Below are positions 45,187 through 54,637 of a stretch of 64,000 nucleotides of DNA, piece after piece. The position numbers and the translations under genes were made by a program. Below the pieces are notes generated by a model, which was given only the letters and a program-made list of their open reading frames with translations, was not told where the DNA came from and ran no database searches. The DNA lies in contig NC_087246.1 in the NCBI RefSeq assembly GCF_037042905.1, forward strand, positions 51,522,001 through 51,586,000, given 5' to 3'. This DNA is from Lytechinus pictus. Its lineage: Eukaryota. How positions within the stretch are numbered: the first letter of the stretch is position 1; each line of letters begins with the position of its first letter.

Positions 45187-46029
45187 CAATGCTGCAGTCA
45201 CACTTATGGAACCAACCAATGACGTGCCACTTAAAATAGGATAATAGGTTTGATAGGTCTGGGCCCCGTCTTACAAAGAGTTACGATTGATCCAATCAAC
45301 CACATCTATGGAAAGCCAGCAACGTCAACATCGAAAATTCACGTTTGTTCAAAACATTTTCTAGATATGATGTCTCTTCATACATTCATAGTTTTCTTGA
45401 AAATTCAGTGTGTTTCTTTTTGTTTACAAAGGACATTGTGCAAATTTCCTGAAGAAAAAATTATGACGTTGATGGATTTCCATATACATGTACTTGAGGT
45501 TGATCGGATCAATCGTAACTATTTGTAAGACGGGGCCCTGGAGTCAGTTTTGTTAATGTGACTGCAGCACAAACACTCAGACAGTATCTTTGGAGTTTAA
45601 TGAAAAGCAAACTTAAATTTAAGTTTGTCATATTAGGTCCGTAGTACCGTTTCTAGGAAACATCCAAGTTTCGAAAATCAACATAGAAAGATAGATCAAC
45701 TATAGGAGAACTGGTTACACATTGCGTTAAATGTCCAAACACCCAAACTCTAGCTGCAATACATTGAAATTTTCAAATAATTTGGTCACTTCCAACAAAA
45801 TGACCACCAAGAATCGGGGGGTCTGTGAGACTGCGGTCTTACCACAGAGTCAAGGTCAGTCCTCCATCGCACTCCATCGCAGTAGTCCATCCAGGACGTA
45901 CGGAGATAAACAGCCTGCTGTTAAGCTCTGCATTGATCGCATCTCCAACTTCACTCATTTCAGAGTCTATTTTTAAAGTCACATGACTTGCCATTGTCAC
46001 CTGACATCACAGTCACCCGACATTCCACC

Positions 46030-49000
46030 CTACATCATAGATGAAGACTGCGTTTGCATGGCTTCTTGCTGCGCTTCTGATGTCTTGGGTTGTTCTACAC
46101 TGCCACCCATGTCGTAGATCTGCGTTTGATGTATGGCGGAGGCATGCTTCATCAATTCCCAAGGGGTGATGGCTTCATGCTGGCAGAATACACATACCCA
46201 ACTTCCAGGTTCTGAAAATGAAAAAAAAATTATCTTCTGAAATTTAACTGAGTGTGATATAACCCTTCAGACCTCCAGTTGTCACACAGACAACATTGTG
46301 TCACAAAATGATACAAGAACGGCATATCATTGTTATCATGATAAGGTATATTTTAACCCCCATCCCCTATCATGAGATAGTACCAATGCGATTAAATTTG
46401 GTAAAGTTATCAATCAATACCAAAATATGTTCCTTGGATGAAAACCAAGCTGTACATTCCTGTGAGAAATTAATAATAAAATATGCAAGAGATACAGCTG
46501 CAAAACACTTTCAAACAGTGCATTGAATACAGAGGTAATCTCGTCTACAGTAGACCCGTGAAAGATGTTTGTCATGTTTCCTAGAATTTGAGTGGGCAGT
46601 AGCAATAAAAGAAGCTGAATAGACTGTCATTGGAACAGCAATGTCCATTACACTTGCCCACTCACACGTAAGAACAATGAGAATAACGCTGCAGCCGATC
46701 ATCGGCTCACGGACCGCTCTCTAGTATCACGCTGGTCTATGGCTCTTCTATGCTGCTGACTGCTATGGGGACGTCGACTGAAATCAAAACTGTTTCGATC
46801 AATGAACGAACGCGATACTGAACGTGAAAAGTGATAACTTCCGGTCAACTAGTACCAAGTGCACGTCATAGACAATCGAAAACTTGTTAATGTAATAGCT
46901 TGTGCAGGTCTCGAGTTGGGTTTCGCCTAAGTGACTGTCTCATTCATGTCTATGTGACAAGAGCAATACAAAGTAACGTGGTTGTCTTACAAACGATCAA
47001 CATCATGAAACCTTAGGCACCTTGTCAAAAGTCAGAGCCAAGTCTTCCCTGCAGGAATCCTGAAAGTGGCTTATTACTACAAATCCTCACATTTTATTAG
47101 GCCCTACATTTTATCATAACAAAACAACGGGAAATGCAGGAAAGCTTCCATGAAAGGACGCATAGCACCTTCATAGCAGATCTTCTGCCTAAAGACATGG
47201 CAAAGACTTTTGACAAGCTGCCTTATGAACACATTTTTTCTTACCATCACCACTCTTGGTTAGTCTATTCCTCTTCTTCATTGTCACCCCTTTAGCTGGA
47301 ATGGTGGGCAGTGAGGAGGGATCAACATACGCTCTGTCAAAGACAATCAAACATAAAAACTAACATTTTGTGATGGAATTCAAGTCACTGCATTCAAACA
47401 CTACCATGCCAGTCATGGCTTAGGAGGAGGGGATGCCTGCCATTACACTGTAGATCAATGATTATTCAATACAAATCAAGTGCATTGCATTGAATAAGCC
47501 AGGGGGCCGTTTCATAAAGCTGTTTGTAAGTTAAGAGCAACTTTAAGAACGACTGGTGATCCCTTCTTGTAGTAAATGGTATATTGATTGGCGATGGTTT
47601 AGAACGTAAGAAAGGATCACCAGTCGTTCTTAAAGTCCCTCTTAACTTACGAACAGCTTTATGAAACGGCCCCCAGTTATCATTAAAGATTTTCAGAGAT
47701 GCCAACTTTTGGAAATCAGAATTAGGGAGGATTTGCAACCGACACCAAATTATGTGCGCGTAGCGGACATCTCGAGCGCGGAGCGCTCGACCCTTGCGGC
47801 CTGGGTCCAGGGCCCGCCTTAGGGCCCTGGAAGCTCTGGGTTTCTAGATGCTCTCTGGTGCAATCTGACCCTTATTTTGGAGCATTTCACATGTTTTTAT
47901 AAAAACATTGTTCCCACTTTTTTAACATAAAAATTAAAGAAAATATCAGATATGCATTTTTACATGTAAAAAAAATGAGGGGACAATAGAAGGAAAGTAC
48001 CTGTTCAACAATAATAATAATGAGGAATTATCCTCTTTATTATTATCAAAGCGCGGGTAACGTCTTCCTCCTCGCTGGTCCCTTGCTTGGTGAAATAAGT
48101 CAACAGGGTACCGTAGGTAACAGTGTATTAACCGCACCTTTTTCTCGGCGGGACAGAATCAAAAGTCGGGGGTGCGGTTTATACACGGTGACAGGTCTGA
48201 GCCAAGCCAATCTCAGCCTGATACCACTACCAGTTTTCAACTCGCGTCGGGTGGCCGAGCGTAGCCGCTTGGGGCAATCCCGTTTAGAGGGGTATGAGCC
48301 GCGGGTATAAAAGGGAAGCAACTATGACTACCGGTATCTGCCGTAAATGTCCCTCAAAGTTATATCACGGTAACAAACGCACCTACCTTCATGAAACTGA
48401 CTATTTTTAATGGTGTGACTCTGTCTTTGTTGTCATTTTTTAGTCATCGAGGCAAAGTTCAGACGCCAATCGATTGCACAGCGCGGTGCAGCTAGCCGAA
48501 TAAGACATGCATGTGTAATGTTTATCGCAACGTCAACGTAAGCTGGCGCTTTACCTTTCCGTGGAAGTTATTTTGTTTGACAAATTATTGGTATTATTTG
48601 ACAATTAATCATCCATCATCTCAAAATCAATCTTCAATCCCCATCTTCACTCCTTCCGACTTTTATTTTTAATTATTATTCACTTTATTCCCGCCCAGAG
48701 CTCCCATTGAAAATACGGTATACCGGTACTAGCATTTTTTTTCCTATTTTGCTGTCTGTAAGATACCGCCACACACGTACTGAGAACTACCGGTAGTGGT
48801 TCAAAGCAGACAAGAAAAACACCTGAACAAAATCGCAAATTTCTCGTATCTTGAACCTTCCCGTATTCCCTTGTCTAAAATTCATGTCAAGACATTGAAT
48901 GCTAGACAGCATTCTGAAAGCAAAAGTGGGGCTGTGATGCAGGAAATATGATATGAACGATCTTCTCGTATGGGTGAGCCCCCATGTTGATGCTGGTATC

Positions 49001-52000
49001 GGTACTTGCAATGAACACCGGTACCATATGTGTGTGTGTGAGGTGACTCGGAGTGTGGAAGTGGCCAATAATATCGGCAACTTGCAGATAAGTGACGAAG
49101 CGCTGATTTCCCATCATTTTTTACTAGTAATTCTTCGATATTTTTTGGTTCTTGACTCTTTCTTAAATACGCATATTAGAGATAGAAAGTAAGTTTGATT
49201 AAATTATTTTTTTTTTGATTTTTTTTTTTTTTTTAATGATTTTTTTTTTTTTTTTTTTTCCATCCGAAAATGGGGGTGCGGTTAATACACGGGTGCGGTT
49301 AATACACCGTTACTTACGGTACTAGTGGAGCTCGAAGATCTCGTCTTCGCAATGTCCGTAAATATGCCGTTTGCTCCCTACGTCAGTACGTGCTTCCGAA
49401 TATCATCACGACCTCCTTGCTCAACTGAAATGTCTACGCTGCAAATTGTGCAAAATGCATGGTAAATTCCTCTTTCCGACTTCCGAATACACGGGTACTG
49501 GAGACTGTATTCAGTCTTATACTTCTGAGACCATTTCTTGGTCTTCTTTTTTGATTTTCCGCCATTTCGTGTCAATATCAACCCATCAATACGCCGAAAT
49601 CACACACCGATATTCCACCGCATGACTCGACAAATCCAGGGCCGCGAGCGCACACGCCTCGCGAAGCTAGCCGGGCCTACCGGCCTGGTGCACAGTGGAT
49701 TCCTGTTGGGCATATCACATGCACCAGCTTTTCGCTGCTCCATATTTGTCTGCCTTTCACACAGAATTTAGTAGCAGCGAACGTAATGGAGTTACTACAT
49801 GCTAAAGTTAGCAGACGATACATGTACTTCCAATCCAATTTGATCAATGCAAAAAAATCGTAATTTCGGGAGGATAAGGATGGTAATCGTAAGGGCGGGA
49901 GTTGGGATGAATTTTCGGGAGCCTCCCGATTAAATCGGGAGGGTTGGCATCTCTGGATTTTGTGCACAGGGCAAATTTAAGTCCAGCTCACGGGTTATGT
50001 AAAGGTGTTTCAAATGTGTATTTGTTTGTATCAGGAGCAAATAAACACAACTTGATTTAGATCCACTCATTTTACTGTTATGATGATGAACAGCATTTGT
50101 ATAGTGCCATTTATGTATACAAAAAACATTCAATGACGCCAGCTCCCCAATATGTCACACTTTATTCACACAGTCGCTAGAAAAGATGGGTCTTTAGTTC
50201 AGATTTGAAGGTCTCAATGTTGTCACAATCACAAAGTTGGATTGGTAGAGAATTCCAAAGACGAGGAGCAACTGATGATAAAAACTCTACCTCTGTGTGT
50301 TTTCAGCGGGTACCTGGGCACTTGAAGAAGTCCAGCAGGAAGAAGTCTTGGCCACAGCTGAACTACGCTGATTAGTCCAGTTACATAGCTAGAGGCCATG
50401 TTAAGTAGAGCTTATAAGCTTCTACTTCTACTTCATTTGAAACAAACAATTTTCAGTTGGACTTCTGAATGAAAATACACTGTGTTTAATGTAATAGGTA
50501 AAAAAGAAGGAATACTTACACATAACCACAATCATGGTTAACTTTTTTGAAGCCTCTTGGTCTGTTTAAGTCAGGATCACTTGCCAAGTATAAATCTAAT
50601 GATATTAAAGAAAGAACAAAAACAAACATTTATAGAAAAAGAAGTGATCGTAATGGGCAGGGGTGTAGACAGAGCGGGGCCCCGTCTTACAAAGAGTTGC
50701 GATTTATCTGATCAATCGAAACTATGGAAAGCCAGCAACATCAACATACATTTATTCATGTTTATTCAAAATATATTCTAATTATGATATATATTCATGC
50801 ATTCATTGTTTTCTTGAAAATTTGCTGTGCTTCTCTGTTTACAAAAACACATTGTGCAAATTTCCTGTAGAAAAAATTATGACATTGATAAATTTCAATA
50901 AAGTTACGATGATTGGATCAATCGTAACTCTCTGTAAGACGGGGCCCAGGAATAATCCCAAACTTCTGAAGTAGTCTGCTGTGCAAACCTTTCACCCGAG
51001 TTAATAGGTACGAATGCGCAGCCTCAATGACTTGTGCATAGAAGGCCCTCTCGATGAAATTGAAACAGCAAGTTTTATATCTTTCGTGCTAGTCTTGTGT
51101 GAAGACCCATTTGTTGATCAAAGTTTCAAACAGGGTCTGTGCCTGCAGACTACTTCTGAAGTGTGTGGAACCGACATGTAGAAAGACATCATGCTTACCA
51201 TCATAAAAAGTCTATGGCCCGTTTCATGAAGGACTTGCAACTGTTGTAACTTTGCCATTATGGCAACTACCATGGTAACCTTGATTCTGATTGGCTGCTG
51301 AGCCCTATTACCATGGTAGTTGCCATAATGGCAAAGTTACAACAGTTGCAAGTCCTTTATGAAACGGGGCCCCTGGTCTATTCTTCTATAACACAAAGAT
51401 TCATAATCGGTTGCAAAACATTAATGGCCTATCAAGATAATCCTTGCTTATGTACATTTTCTTCAGACAACTGACCTAGTTATCAAGCAAAGACACTTCT
51501 CTATTTGCAATTGATCGCAAACCTTTGTTTTACTGGGGAAAGGTAGTAATGATGTACATGTAGATAATAGTGTTGTAGACTGTAGATTCACTACATTGCA
51601 CTGTAGTCTGTAAACTTCGGCACATATACAATGTGCAAAGATGAGAAGATTACTAATATAAAATGTGTTATCCTTCAGACATCAGTATTTTTGCCTGAAA
51701 TATTGATAAACAATCTGAATTATTAGAAAAATGTCAATGTAGTCCAATTGTATAACAAATATGAATTCATAAGGGTTACTCTGAAAAGCGACTACGGTAT
51801 AAAAAGAGATTTCTGCTCAGGAACCGAAATCTTGATGGTCACTGACTTATTTCTATAAATGGTGTGTTATTTGCAAAGAACCAAGAAATTGAAAGATGTA
51901 AATTTTCACAAAATTAAATGAGAAATTATCCAATATGTACTTGTGTAGGATGTTTCATTTTTAATTTCTTGTGAAAATTGCTCCCATGAACGTAAAATAT

Positions 52001-53595
52001 GTGCTTGTACCAAATATTTATCATCAACTTATAATAGCCTAATATTCCTACTATTCCTATTATTCTGAACCAAAACCCGTCAAGGCTCTAACCTTAACAT
52101 TTTTGAAAGAGAAATAAGAAAGGAGTAAATAAAGCAATTGGACCAATATATTTTAAACCCTAACACTGAACAAACATACATGTAGGCAGATTGAATAACT
52201 TCAATGAAGACACAGAATCTGAGGTGTGTATAAATTGTATAACTTCAATGAAGACACAGAATCTTAGGTGTGTATATAAAATATGGAAGTTTCTATAACA
52301 GTGGTCTCATTGTCCTCCTTGAAAATCATGACAGGCCTAGGCCAGATCCACAGGTAAGTACATGTACATGAAGATCGAAGATGCATTGCTAATGGAATTG
52401 ACAACCAATCAGCATGATACTACCGGTAGTCTGTGTTAATTCACTAAGGCCCGTATTCTGAAGTCAGGTTTAACTAAGACCATGGATTAACTCTGTGCTA
52501 AAATTATGGGAAGCCAAAAGTGTCAAAATTTGTATTAAGTTGTTTGTTTCTTATGTTAACTGTGCTATTTTCTGATTCATCGATGGTGAAGACAATCATC
52601 TATTTATAATTACTAGACAATTATGAATGATTTGAGAGCCAAATGAGCTGAAATATATCTCTACTGTTAGTGATCTATGTAAAAATTGGCTATACATACA
52701 CTTAAACCACTACTTTAAACCTGAGTTTAAGTTAAACCCAACTTCAGAATACAGGACTACGGGTCTAACAGTCTGTAACAAGAGCTGTTTGAGCAACCCG
52801 TGGAGCTGAATACTTCATAAGTTGCTGCGCAAAAACCTGCATATCATCGCTGGGGTGTTCAATCCTTGCATCTCAAATTCAAAAATTTGAGGAAAGCTCA
52901 GAAAAACCTTGTTTTTGGAATCAGAACATAAGTAGGAACCTTCTTTTGCCTAGAAAGAGATTTCTACAGGAATTAGGAAACGGTTATGAGATGACATGAG
53001 GTTGCCAACAATGCCATAATTCTAAAAAAAGAAGCTTTTTCTGAGCAGTCCTGGCAATGCATTATTCCATAGTCTCACCTAGCGGTTGACTCTTGATGAG
53101 TTTTCCCTGTTCCCCTCTCATGGCATTCTTAGCTTGTTCAGCCGTTTCAAACTGCACAAACCCAAATCCGCTGTGGATGGAGATGGCCCTGATACGTCCG
53201 TATTTCATGAATGTCTCCATCAAGAGCTCCATGATGTTCTTCCGGTCCTCCTTCCTGGTGTACGTGTTCAGGTTGCCGACAAAGACGCGGGCCGCCTTGG
53301 CCGAAGGCGACATGTCGTTGGTGTAGTTGCTCACCGCCGGATACTTGCTCATGAAGCTGTTCATGGCTGCTCCGCTCATTCCCTGGTGGCCTCCCATGCC
53401 TTGCATGTTACCCATGCCCATCCCCATCCCCTGCATGCCCATACCCAAACCCATCCCCATGCCCATATTCCCCATGCTCCCCATGTTTCCCATATTCATT
53501 CCCATGCCATGGGGACCACCGTGGGGTCCGCCGTGGTGGTGGGGCTGATGACCATGGTGGCCGTAGCCGGGCCCAGAGCCATAGTTGCGGTGCAT
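46030..53595 (-). CDS. hnRNP C/RALY-like RRM protein with N-terminal Gly/His/Met low-complexity region and C-terminal C2H2 zinc finger, 4 coding exons, 287 aa
   Basis: Exons 53079-53595 (acceptor at 53621-53622), 50520-50595, 47245-47333 and 46030-46211; all GT-AG, phases 1/2/1, 864 nt. RRM: SNYTND.SP...ARVFVGNLNT...FMKYGRI..ISIHSGFGFVQF......A..A..GE.G..I..QPLDLYLASDP, matching the hnRNP C RRM pattern. Last exon EPGSWVCVFCQHEAITPWELMKHASAIHQTQIY. Confidence 0.85.
47503..47673. mobile_element. Palindromic MITE (GGGGCCGTTTCATAAAG termini, CAG TSD); related element at 51216-51372
   Basis: Long inverted arms; CAG on both sides. Confidence 0.85.
47694..49955 (-). mobile_element. Non-autonomous hAT-like (Blackjack-like) element with remnant of the transposase N-terminal zinc finger; 6-bp TSD
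   Basis: TIR CAGAGATGCCAAC / GTTGGCATCTCTG, GATTTT on both flanks. ORF 49378-49581 reads KYKTEY..QYPCIRKS.....HAFCTICSVDISVEQGGRDDIRKH. Confidence 0.75.
48111..49319. mobile_element. Tc1/mariner-pogo-like non-autonomous element nested in the hAT-like element
   Basis: TA-CCGTAGGTAACAGTGTATTAACCGCACC ... GGTGCGGTTAATACACCGTTACTTACGG-TA (TA TSD). Confidence 0.8.
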
Positions 53596-54637
53596 CGCTG
53601 AGAGAGGTTGGTCTCTTGAGCTGCAGACAGAAAAAAAATTTACATCCTTGATATAAGTCATACATATATCATGTGAGAGGTATATTGAAAATCCCAAAGC
53701 AACATCGACACCCAATTAATCAATTTGAACGTACTAAAAAATATACTTGAAGGGATAGAGCCTCGTCGATCTGGCGCTGCACAGCGGCAGCCGGGCCCAC
53801 GATCAATTGGGCAAAGCAAATTTTCGGAGTATTTCATTTCATGTCTATTTCGAACAATAAAATATGGATTTTCATTTTTTTATAAGGCAGTGATTTTTCT
53901 AGTTGTCTTTCCTGCGTTTAAGATTATAAGGAGGATATTTCTAGAGACAGTCAAGCAGTCTGCTCCTCTAAGTATACACAACTGTGCATCACCTTTGTCC
54001 ACATATGTCGAGTTTCATAAAGAATTAGGAGAGACTATATTAAACAATGCTAATTCCACAGGTTCAGGAAAGAATCAATTGTTTTTTCACTTGACAATGA
54101 GAAAATTAGAATATTTCATATTTCATATAATAAAATACAAAATAGTGAGTGGAAGAAATCATCAGTCTTCACATTTGCATGTACCAATCAGGATGTGCAT
54201 ATAACTGTTTTGTGAAATAAAGCAAAACTTTAAAATGTAACAACTTTCTTATTTTACATCCGATTTCGATGAAATTTTCAGTGTTATACTTGTGGGATTT
54301 TTCTCTTTTTATTGAAAACAACTTTTGTTGGGGTGGACTTGTCCTTTAACAAGTTTCAAATTAGGAAAAAAGTAATGACATTGGCATTTCAAATCTAAAG
54401 AAAAGAGCAAAATTTTAACAAGAAAATCCTTACAAAGATATGCAGTTAGCAAAGAATGGTTTGCTAACATTATCCATTTTTTCTGATCATGTATGATGGT
54501 GATCGAAAAAAATTTGTTTGTCTGGAACATGGGGTGGTTTGTAAAGAAAAAAATAACATAACACGATAAATTTAATAAAACATGAGAGTTCAGAGACTAT
54601 AAGGAGAAAAATAAAATTTCTGGACATTCTGGTTTAA

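Follow-up and report, generated by a model that had tools for sequence, protein, structure and literature searches.

Vertebrate hnRNP C functions as a tetramer held together by a leucine zipper. In the vertebrate relatives, nascent RNA is bound at its uridine tracts through the RNA recognition motif (RRM), and the high-affinity RNA binding of vertebrate hnRNP C is given by its basic region. In the zinc finger protein BCL11A, multimerisation controls the silencing of fetal haemoglobin, and the role of finger 1 is under active study for that reason. BCL11A finger 1 is an isolated, atypical finger that has hydrophobic residues at the usual DNA-contact positions and a predicted dimer interface (PMC12006351). 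The same source cites Zheng et al. 2024 for the requirement of this finger in BCL11A multimer formation. Both proteins bear on the gene analysed here, which is found on the minus strand of a 64,000-nucleotide stretch of the sea urchin Lytechinus pictus genome (contig NC_087246.1, positions 51,522,001 to 51,586,000; hereafter the window). It encodes a protein of about 288 residues composed of a head, an RRM, a basic linker and a single atypical C2H2 finger. The locus is very probably one of three clustered Lytechinus genes for a non-vertebrate form of hnRNP C/RALY that carries a finger of the BCL11 finger 1 type. Judged by sequence comparison, non-vertebrate members of the hnRNP C/RALY family normally combine RRM and finger, and the window gene is a plain member of the non-vertebrate hnRNP C-like family.

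Gene Structure and Predicted Product

The coding sequence is distributed over four exons of the window minus strand (53595-53079, 50595-50520, 47333-47245 and 46211-46030). They are joined in frame with GT/AG borders; the introns have phases 1, 2 and 1 across the three junctions and the reading frame is kept throughout. Exons, junctions, borders and phases agree with those proposed in the initial annotation of this DNA, which was made from the sequence alone. The three peptides quoted there are also correct, exon B being slightly longer than quoted (to ...KKVNHDCGYV). The features of the gene, in window coordinates, are the following:

53079..53595, minus strand: coding part of exon A, with the start codon, the His/Gly/Met-rich head and the RRM; ATG at 53595, donor G/gtgaga after 53079
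53362..53595, minus strand: His/Gly/Met-rich low-complexity head of about 78 residues, from the translation; kept in S. purpuratus and Diadema
53083..53286, minus strand: RRM of the hnRNP C/RALY type; Pfam RRM_1, E 1.9e-10, residues 104-171
50520..50595, minus strand: exon B, post-RRM extension (DLYLASDPDLNRPRGFKK...), homologous to hnRNP C LDINLAAEPKVNRGKAG; ...attag before, gtaagt after
47245..47333, minus strand: exon C, linker with a basic KKRNR patch (47264-47278); ...gacag before, gtaag after
46030..46211, minus strand: coding part of exon D, finger and 25-residue Gln/Ser-rich tail; ...tttcag before, stop codon TAG at 46032-46030
46114..46211, minus strand: extended finger motif from EP to IY, C-x2-C-x12-H-x4-H
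45521..46029, minus strand: 3′ untranslated region (UTR), minimum extent; transcript contigs 45521-46211 and 45672-46211, stranded depth continuing below 46030

Exon A probably starts at an acceptor at 53621, preceded by ...ctgcag, which would give 26 nt more of 5′ UTR. The amino-terminus of the product is MHRNY, as in the gene-model proteins P0003 and P0004, and GMGMG runs are found within the His/Gly/Met-rich head (53362-53595). The KKRNR patch of exon C is likely a nuclear localisation signal, a role that we assume from its position relative to hnRNP C. Exon C, by its final bases, contributes the D of the DEP motif together with the opening base of the E codon. Read across exons C and D the finger is DEP-GSWV-C-x2-C-x12-H-x4-H-QTQ-IY, with zinc ligands encoded at 46194-46192 (Cys), 46185-46183 (Cys), 46146-46144 (His) and 46131-46129 (His). 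The protein ends 33 residues past the last zinc-binding His.

Transcript Evidence

Four RNA runs were aligned to the segment 45400-51300 of the window. The joints 46211/47245 and 47333/50520, with ends CT..AC (equivalent to GT..AG on the minus strand), were present in two runs of transcript contigs. The same two joints were found in two runs of stranded raw RNA-seq, in which they were supported by 6+6 and 6+4 reads with several start points. The first mate of the exon reads was always on the plus strand, which fits RNA made from the minus strand. Contigs and stranded reads both include the segment 46030-46211, whose presence in transcripts the initial annotation had made a touchstone of its proposal. 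The locus is thus a genuine, expressed gene, already modelled as hnRNP C-like.

The junction 53079>50595 lies outside the aligned segment. An identical join is found in the NCBI models of three echinoid genera (the L. pictus “hnRNP C-like” protein, 99% identical to the window product, isoform X2 of S. purpuratus LOC100888393 and the Diadema setosum “hnRNP C-like 1” protein), and the alignment to hnRNP C (structure 2MXY, see below) is continuous across it. The junction is supported by the three model proteins that carry it and by the alignment that crosses it. Two of the three proposed junctions (50520>47333 and 47245>46211) were therefore seen directly in RNA, the third being backed by gene models and homology. 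One contig of 1195 nt comprises 45521-46211, 47245-47333 and 50520-50598; it departs from the genome sequence at 50595 and extends for 336 nt more with a sequence that does not come from the intron. The carboxyl-terminal 122 residues are 87–88% identical among the three echinoid genera, a conservation far beyond chance for exons of this small size. A gene-fusion or mis-splicing artefact was ruled out by the RNA joints and by short contigs of other species that encode both RRM and finger.

An RRM of the hnRNP C/RALY Type

The closest solved relatives of the RRM and its extension are hnRNP C1/C2 (2MXY, 63.8 bits, E 1.6e-16) and RALY (1WF1, 55.6 bits, E 5.7e-14), with 1WF2 between them at 61.3 bits and the next family scoring 38.7 bits. 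The alignment to 2MXY covers LDLYLASDPDFNRPKGF versus LDINLAAEPKVNRGKAG. This ranking bears out the assignment of the RRM to the hnRNP C/RALY type made in the initial annotation. An RRM of the NCOA5 type, which had been considered there as the alternative, is excluded because hnRNP C and RALY rank first among the solved relatives.

Like vertebrate hnRNP C1/C2, RALY and RALYL the urchin protein has one N-terminal RRM of the same sub-type. As in vertebrate hnRNP C/RALY, this domain is followed by a post-RRM extension (LD-x-x-LA-x-x-P-x-x-NR) and then by a basic patch. RRM, extension and basic patch together place the window product in the hnRNP C/RALY family in its broad sense. It differs from the vertebrate proteins in three ways. 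Six extra residues are inserted within the first third of the RRM relative to vertebrate hnRNP C (2MXY alignment), the RRM is preceded by the His/Gly/Met-rich head, which vertebrate hnRNP C as aligned here lacks, and in place of the zipper and acidic tail of vertebrate hnRNP C/RALY there is a single C2H2 finger followed by a short Gln/Ser tail. The absence of the vertebrate leucine zipper and acidic tail, as first annotated, holds: the zipper motif LxxIKxELxxIK was found neither in the window product, with its short end after the last His, nor in any finger-bearing protein of the set examined (see below). The product consequently falls outside vertebrate hnRNP C proper, which is defined by a basic region, a zipper and an acidic tail.

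Distribution of the RRM-Finger Layout

A word-based search with the carboxyl-terminal 122 residues matched echinoids alone, so that an exhaustive search was required to see the family. An exhaustive HMMER search with the S. purpuratus protein, from the RRM to its end, gave 790 matches at E ≤ 0.001. The layout was examined in 152 proteins (the matches listed and the proteins from the first search). An RRM followed by one finger of the form C-x2-C-x12-H-x(3-5)-H is present in 63 of them, all but two with the H-x4-H spacing, and the Trp and Leu of the finger helix are at least 90% conserved in the family. The carriers that could be named belong to all five echinoderm classes (including a crinoid, a sea cucumber and a brittle star), to the hemichordates and amphioxus (where the proteins are called RALY or hnRNP C-like) and to the arthropods (mosquito, soldier fly, Drosophila, sand fly, copepod, scorpion and sea spider). 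They also include a priapulid, abalone, an annelid, a brachiopod, a tapeworm, a fluke and a monogenean. Several carriers are short transcript contigs (1.2–2.1 kb), each of which encodes RRM and finger together.

Parts arranged in this order, with an identical finger signature, are found in non-vertebrate gene models from amphioxus (XP_035671633.1), Lingula (XP_013382175.1), Haliotis (XP_067651460.1), Echinococcus (CDI97126.1) and Aedes (XP_062708330.1). Insect members are much longer than the urchin protein (517–762 residues). Echinoid gene 1 departs from the family in that its finger has lost the core Phe and a Met-rich head has been gained. The window product belongs to the RRM-finger family, whose profile gives its finger 61.7 bits. 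The layout described in the initial annotation as an unusual domain fusion is therefore standard for the hnRNP C-like proteins of non-vertebrate Bilateria, and gene models with this layout already exist in the same genus. The fusion is neither unusual nor specific to one lineage.

The zipper motif or its IKxEL core is found in 27 of the 89 finger-less proteins of the examined set, and 25 of these 27 show, N-terminal to the RRM, visible sequence of the vertebrate hnRNP C/RALY/RALYL type. Sequence of the hnRNP C/RALY/RALYL type also precedes the RRM in the top-ranking finger-less matches of the exhaustive search. Zipper and finger occur together in none of the 152 proteins, and among the 150 representatives listed the vertebrate hnRNP C/RALY-type proteins have the zipper and lack the finger. 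The invertebrate proteins treated as hnRNP C orthologues, in the fly and in others, thus differ from the human protein in its tetramer-forming part, and results may not transfer between fly or other invertebrates and human without checking. CG42458 has been treated as the fly hnRNP C (PMC5570092); its equivalence to the Drosophila member found here is that of a candidate. A literature search found no paper on an RRM-finger hnRNP C nor any that joins CG42458 and C2H2. The presence of a BCL11 finger-1-type finger in this family and its replacement of the zipper appear unreported in the searchable literature.

The names given to family members in databases vary. The 718-residue Drosophila teissieri protein XP_043651168.1 (P0021) is labelled “transcription factor kayak”, which looks like a naming error, and members from other species are labelled SRSF5-like, VASP homolog or “nuclear polyadenylated RNA-binding protein 3-like”.

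Three Clustered Genes in Lytechinus pictus

Just three RRM exons of the hnRNP C type were identified in the L. pictus genome at E ≤ 0.001. They are confined to a region of about 80 kb, and each is paired on its strand with a separate finger exon located 3.5–7 kb downstream. As no other hnRNP C-type RRM gene was found at this threshold, the three urchin genes are the co-orthologues of hnRNP C/RALY. The two paralogues of the window gene are located 5.5 kb and 56.5 kb past the right end of the window (G000:C2:51591481-51596769, minus strand, and G000:C2:51642510-51646296, plus strand), and each consists of an RRM exon and a finger exon. The most BCL11-like finger of the three is that of paralogue 3 (38.1 bits, see below).

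Kinship of the Finger with BCL11 Finger 1

Two profiles were used for comparison: a family profile of 62 family fingers with their flanks (A1), which was searched against the whole 812-Mb genome, and a reference set of BCL11 finger 1 from 16 diverse animals, made of database-retrieved sequences (A2), whose consensus is EPSxYIC-xTCKQxF-xSAW-xLLQHAQ-xxH-GxxIY. The genome search with A1 found the fingers of the three paralogous genes at 56–62 bits, the window finger among them, and then BCL11 finger 1 at 41.7 bits (E 7.6e-8). Every other finger of the genome scored 28 bits or less, leaving a gap of 13 bits below BCL11 finger 1. The 41.7-bit match comes first among the fingers of a 753-codon open frame; BCL11 fingers 2-3 and 4-6 follow in this frame, which is 97% identical to the L. 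variegatus “BCL11B-like” protein. The true BCL11 gene of this genome is located elsewhere, with a large last exon at L030:3390-5651, minus strand (G000:C7:19344390-19346651).

Direct comparison of the two profiles with hhalign gave a score of 88 (E 3e-23). In a control with the separate BCL11 fingers A1 scored 83.9 against finger 1 versus 29.5, 23.1, 31.6, 19.2 and 25.8 against fingers 2 to 6. When the A1 model was run on the 16 BCL11 proteins, finger 1 reached 34–55 bits and all other fingers −3 to +7. In the reverse direction, the best non-BCL11 match of the BCL11 finger 1 profile in the genome was the finger of paralogue 3 (38.1 bits, E 1.1e-6). Non-vertebrate family fingers score 14–52 bits with this profile, the value of 52 being reached by members from other phyla. 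A genome search with the single sequence of the urchin BCL11 finger 1 found nothing beyond itself, showing that profiles are needed.

The family shares with BCL11A/BCL11B finger 1 the C-x2-C-x12-H-x4-H spacing, the EP placed 6 and 5 residues before the first Cys, the IY placed 4 and 5 residues past the last His, the S-A-W-x-L start of the helix and a Q among the residues that separate the His ligands. In both cases the finger stands alone and scores under the Pfam C2H2 cut-offs. The window finger conforms to the spacing and flanks EP-x4-C-x2-C-x12-H-x4-H-x3-IY, as seen when its sequence (DEPGSWVC...H-ASAI-H-QTQ-IY) is set against BCL11 (DEPSSYIC...H-AQNT-H-GFR-IY). It lacks the hydrophobic run (A-W-F-L-L) and the core Phe that BCL11 finger 1 has four residues past its second Cys; most family members keep the core Phe and have a helix start of the form A/P-W-D/E-L-M. 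Unlike BCL11A/B, the finger is carried by an unrelated host protein and its hydrophobic run is broken by an acidic residue. With one finger only, the window product is not a member of the BCL11 protein family. The other BCL11 features sought in it (the N-terminal CCHC finger and the DNA-binding fingers 2-3 and 4-6) were not found. The protein begins with MHRNY and so has no N-terminal repressor motif of the BCL11 type.

At the family level the finger shares its sub-type with the isolated BCL11 finger 1, the window copy being a diverged member. The likeness claimed in the initial annotation for the window finger itself holds through the family profile and one paralogue; taken alone, this finger scores in the generic range. 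BCL11A finger 1 accordingly has many and diverse natural relatives in a second protein family, which could serve for mapping the residues that matter in pairing.

The intron before the finger is in phase 1 in both the hnRNP C-like and the BCL11 genes of the urchin. It is placed 3–4 codons nearer to the finger in the hnRNP C-like gene, and a shared intron position was for this reason rejected as a proof of exon shuffling. Finger 1 of echinoderm BCL11 has other residues in place of the Trp and the EP that are conserved elsewhere (AAEKYIC...NAATLL), which makes the urchin copy the least typical of the set.

Fold and Database Visibility of the Finger

An AlphaFold2 model computed with the family alignment has the beta-beta-alpha fold of a finger (mean pLDDT 87.9). 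Foldseek placed C2H2 fingers on top of the list of its structural neighbours at 0.8–1.4 Å root mean square deviation, with non-significant E values (E ≥ 0.35). Pfam had no match at E ≤ 10 in the three small exons, and its search on the 62 family fingers returned generic C2H2 models alone, all sub-threshold, and no specific family. The zf-C2H2 gathering score is reached neither by the window finger nor by family members or BCL11 finger 1. A profile search of the PDB found generic fingers alone (best single finger about 14 bits), with BCL11 finger 1 not among the matches, and the ESM Atlas returned generic C2H2 clusters alone. As neither finger type reaches the Pfam C2H2 cut-offs or has a specific family, databases show only the RRM. 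The finger is thereby invisible to Pfam-based annotation throughout the family. The locus itself is mostly a matter of tidy annotation.

Possible Role of the Finger and Alternative Explanations

The finger may be a protein-protein module rather than a DNA reader. It would serve for self-association, doing the job of the leucine-zipper oligomerisation domain of the vertebrate proteins. This role, drawn by analogy, is tentatively favoured because of the dimerisation model for BCL11A finger 1, the unsuitable DNA contacts and the mutual exclusion of finger and zipper. The helix positions −1, 2, 3 and 6 of the family consensus, aligned to standard finger numbering, are S/N, W, D/E and V/K, a combination ill-suited to DNA reading. 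A homodimer prediction with residues 172-244 and zinc reached a score of 0.03 with an own-fold pLDDT of about 50, values that weigh neither way on binding. The link to chromatin or transcription complexes proposed in the initial annotation finds no support here, and the literature on BCL11A finger 1 favours self-association over DNA binding (PMC12006351).

Several observations speak against a BCL11-type, self-associating finger at this locus. The window finger itself scores 25.4 bits (E 0.011, genome search) or 21.6 bits with the BCL11 finger 1 profile, the former value being below three unrelated fingers at about 27 bits. It has an Ala (QHEA) in place of the core Phe and P-W-E-L-M at the helix start, Pro-Trp-Glu standing for Ala-Trp-Asp. 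In the family as a whole the helix start is acidic where BCL11A has a Phe, and the pairing interface need not be conserved in consequence. The two finger types may have a common ancestor or may have converged, and the self-association role is itself suggested by analogy. Scores of 21.6–25.4 bits are within the generic range, and together with the lack of a Pfam match and the blank single-sequence reverse search they would suit a generic, degenerate C2H2 finger whose likeness to BCL11 finger 1 arose by convergence or chance. This explanation is nevertheless improbable, convergence keeping a small probability and chance being ruled out by the controls at the family level: finger 1 stands at 34–55 bits where the other fingers of the same proteins stay at 7 or less, the hhalign scores are 84–88 versus 19–32, the best generic finger of the 812-Mb genome falls 13 bits short, and the EP and IY flanks match too, at fixed spacing.

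Functions other than self-association can be envisaged. RNA-binding single C2H2 fingers exist, and the finger could be a nucleic-acid binder that adds affinity or specificity for RNA or DNA, replacing the role of the basic region of vertebrate hnRNP C. Its location after the basic linker, the C2H2 fold of the model and the DNA-binding fingers that are its top structural neighbours would agree with such a function. We consider it rather unlikely, as the helix contact positions are acidic or hydrophobic instead of the polar and basic set of DNA readers, the finger is alone with all Pfam models of nucleic-acid fingers below threshold, and for the related BCL11A finger 1 the literature describes a non-canonical finger that does not bind DNA (PMC12006351). 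The finger might also recruit partners that it has in common with BCL11, from chromatin or transcription complexes, or pair with BCL11 finger 1 itself, coupling RNA binding to transcription. Within this genome BCL11 is the only other bearer of the finger type, and the predicted self-pairing of BCL11 finger 1 makes mixed pairs conceivable (PMC12006351). Against this, the same paper reports no partner of BCL11 finger 1 except itself, the interface residues are unlike (W-D/E-L-M versus W-F-L-L) and the Trp itself is replaced in echinoderm BCL11; we hold this possibility to be very doubtful. Equally speculative is the broader idea that the finger would be an ancient portable pairing module of just these two families, whose mixed pairs would tie the packaging of nascent RNA to the BCL11 repressor complex. 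Self-association of the finger within the hnRNP C-like family stays the preferred, if tentative, reading.

Intronic and Flanking Sequences

RNA reads and one contig join window positions 48106 and 49318 within intron 2, on both strands, skipping 1211 nt. The skipped segment (48107-49317) looks like an insertion of the reference that is absent from other copies or individuals, or like a repeat-derived transcript. The same intron contains an open frame of 67 codons (49378-49581, minus strand) whose Cys/His pattern is similar to that of the amino-terminal zinc-finger region in transposase genes that have been domesticated or have degraded. From 49340 to 49930 there are reads from both strands. 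Very high-copy repeats lie beside the exons (45400-45596, 47370-47763 and 50522-51300), where the summed contig depth is 10,000–50,000. At these exon flanks many reads continue into unlike sequence.

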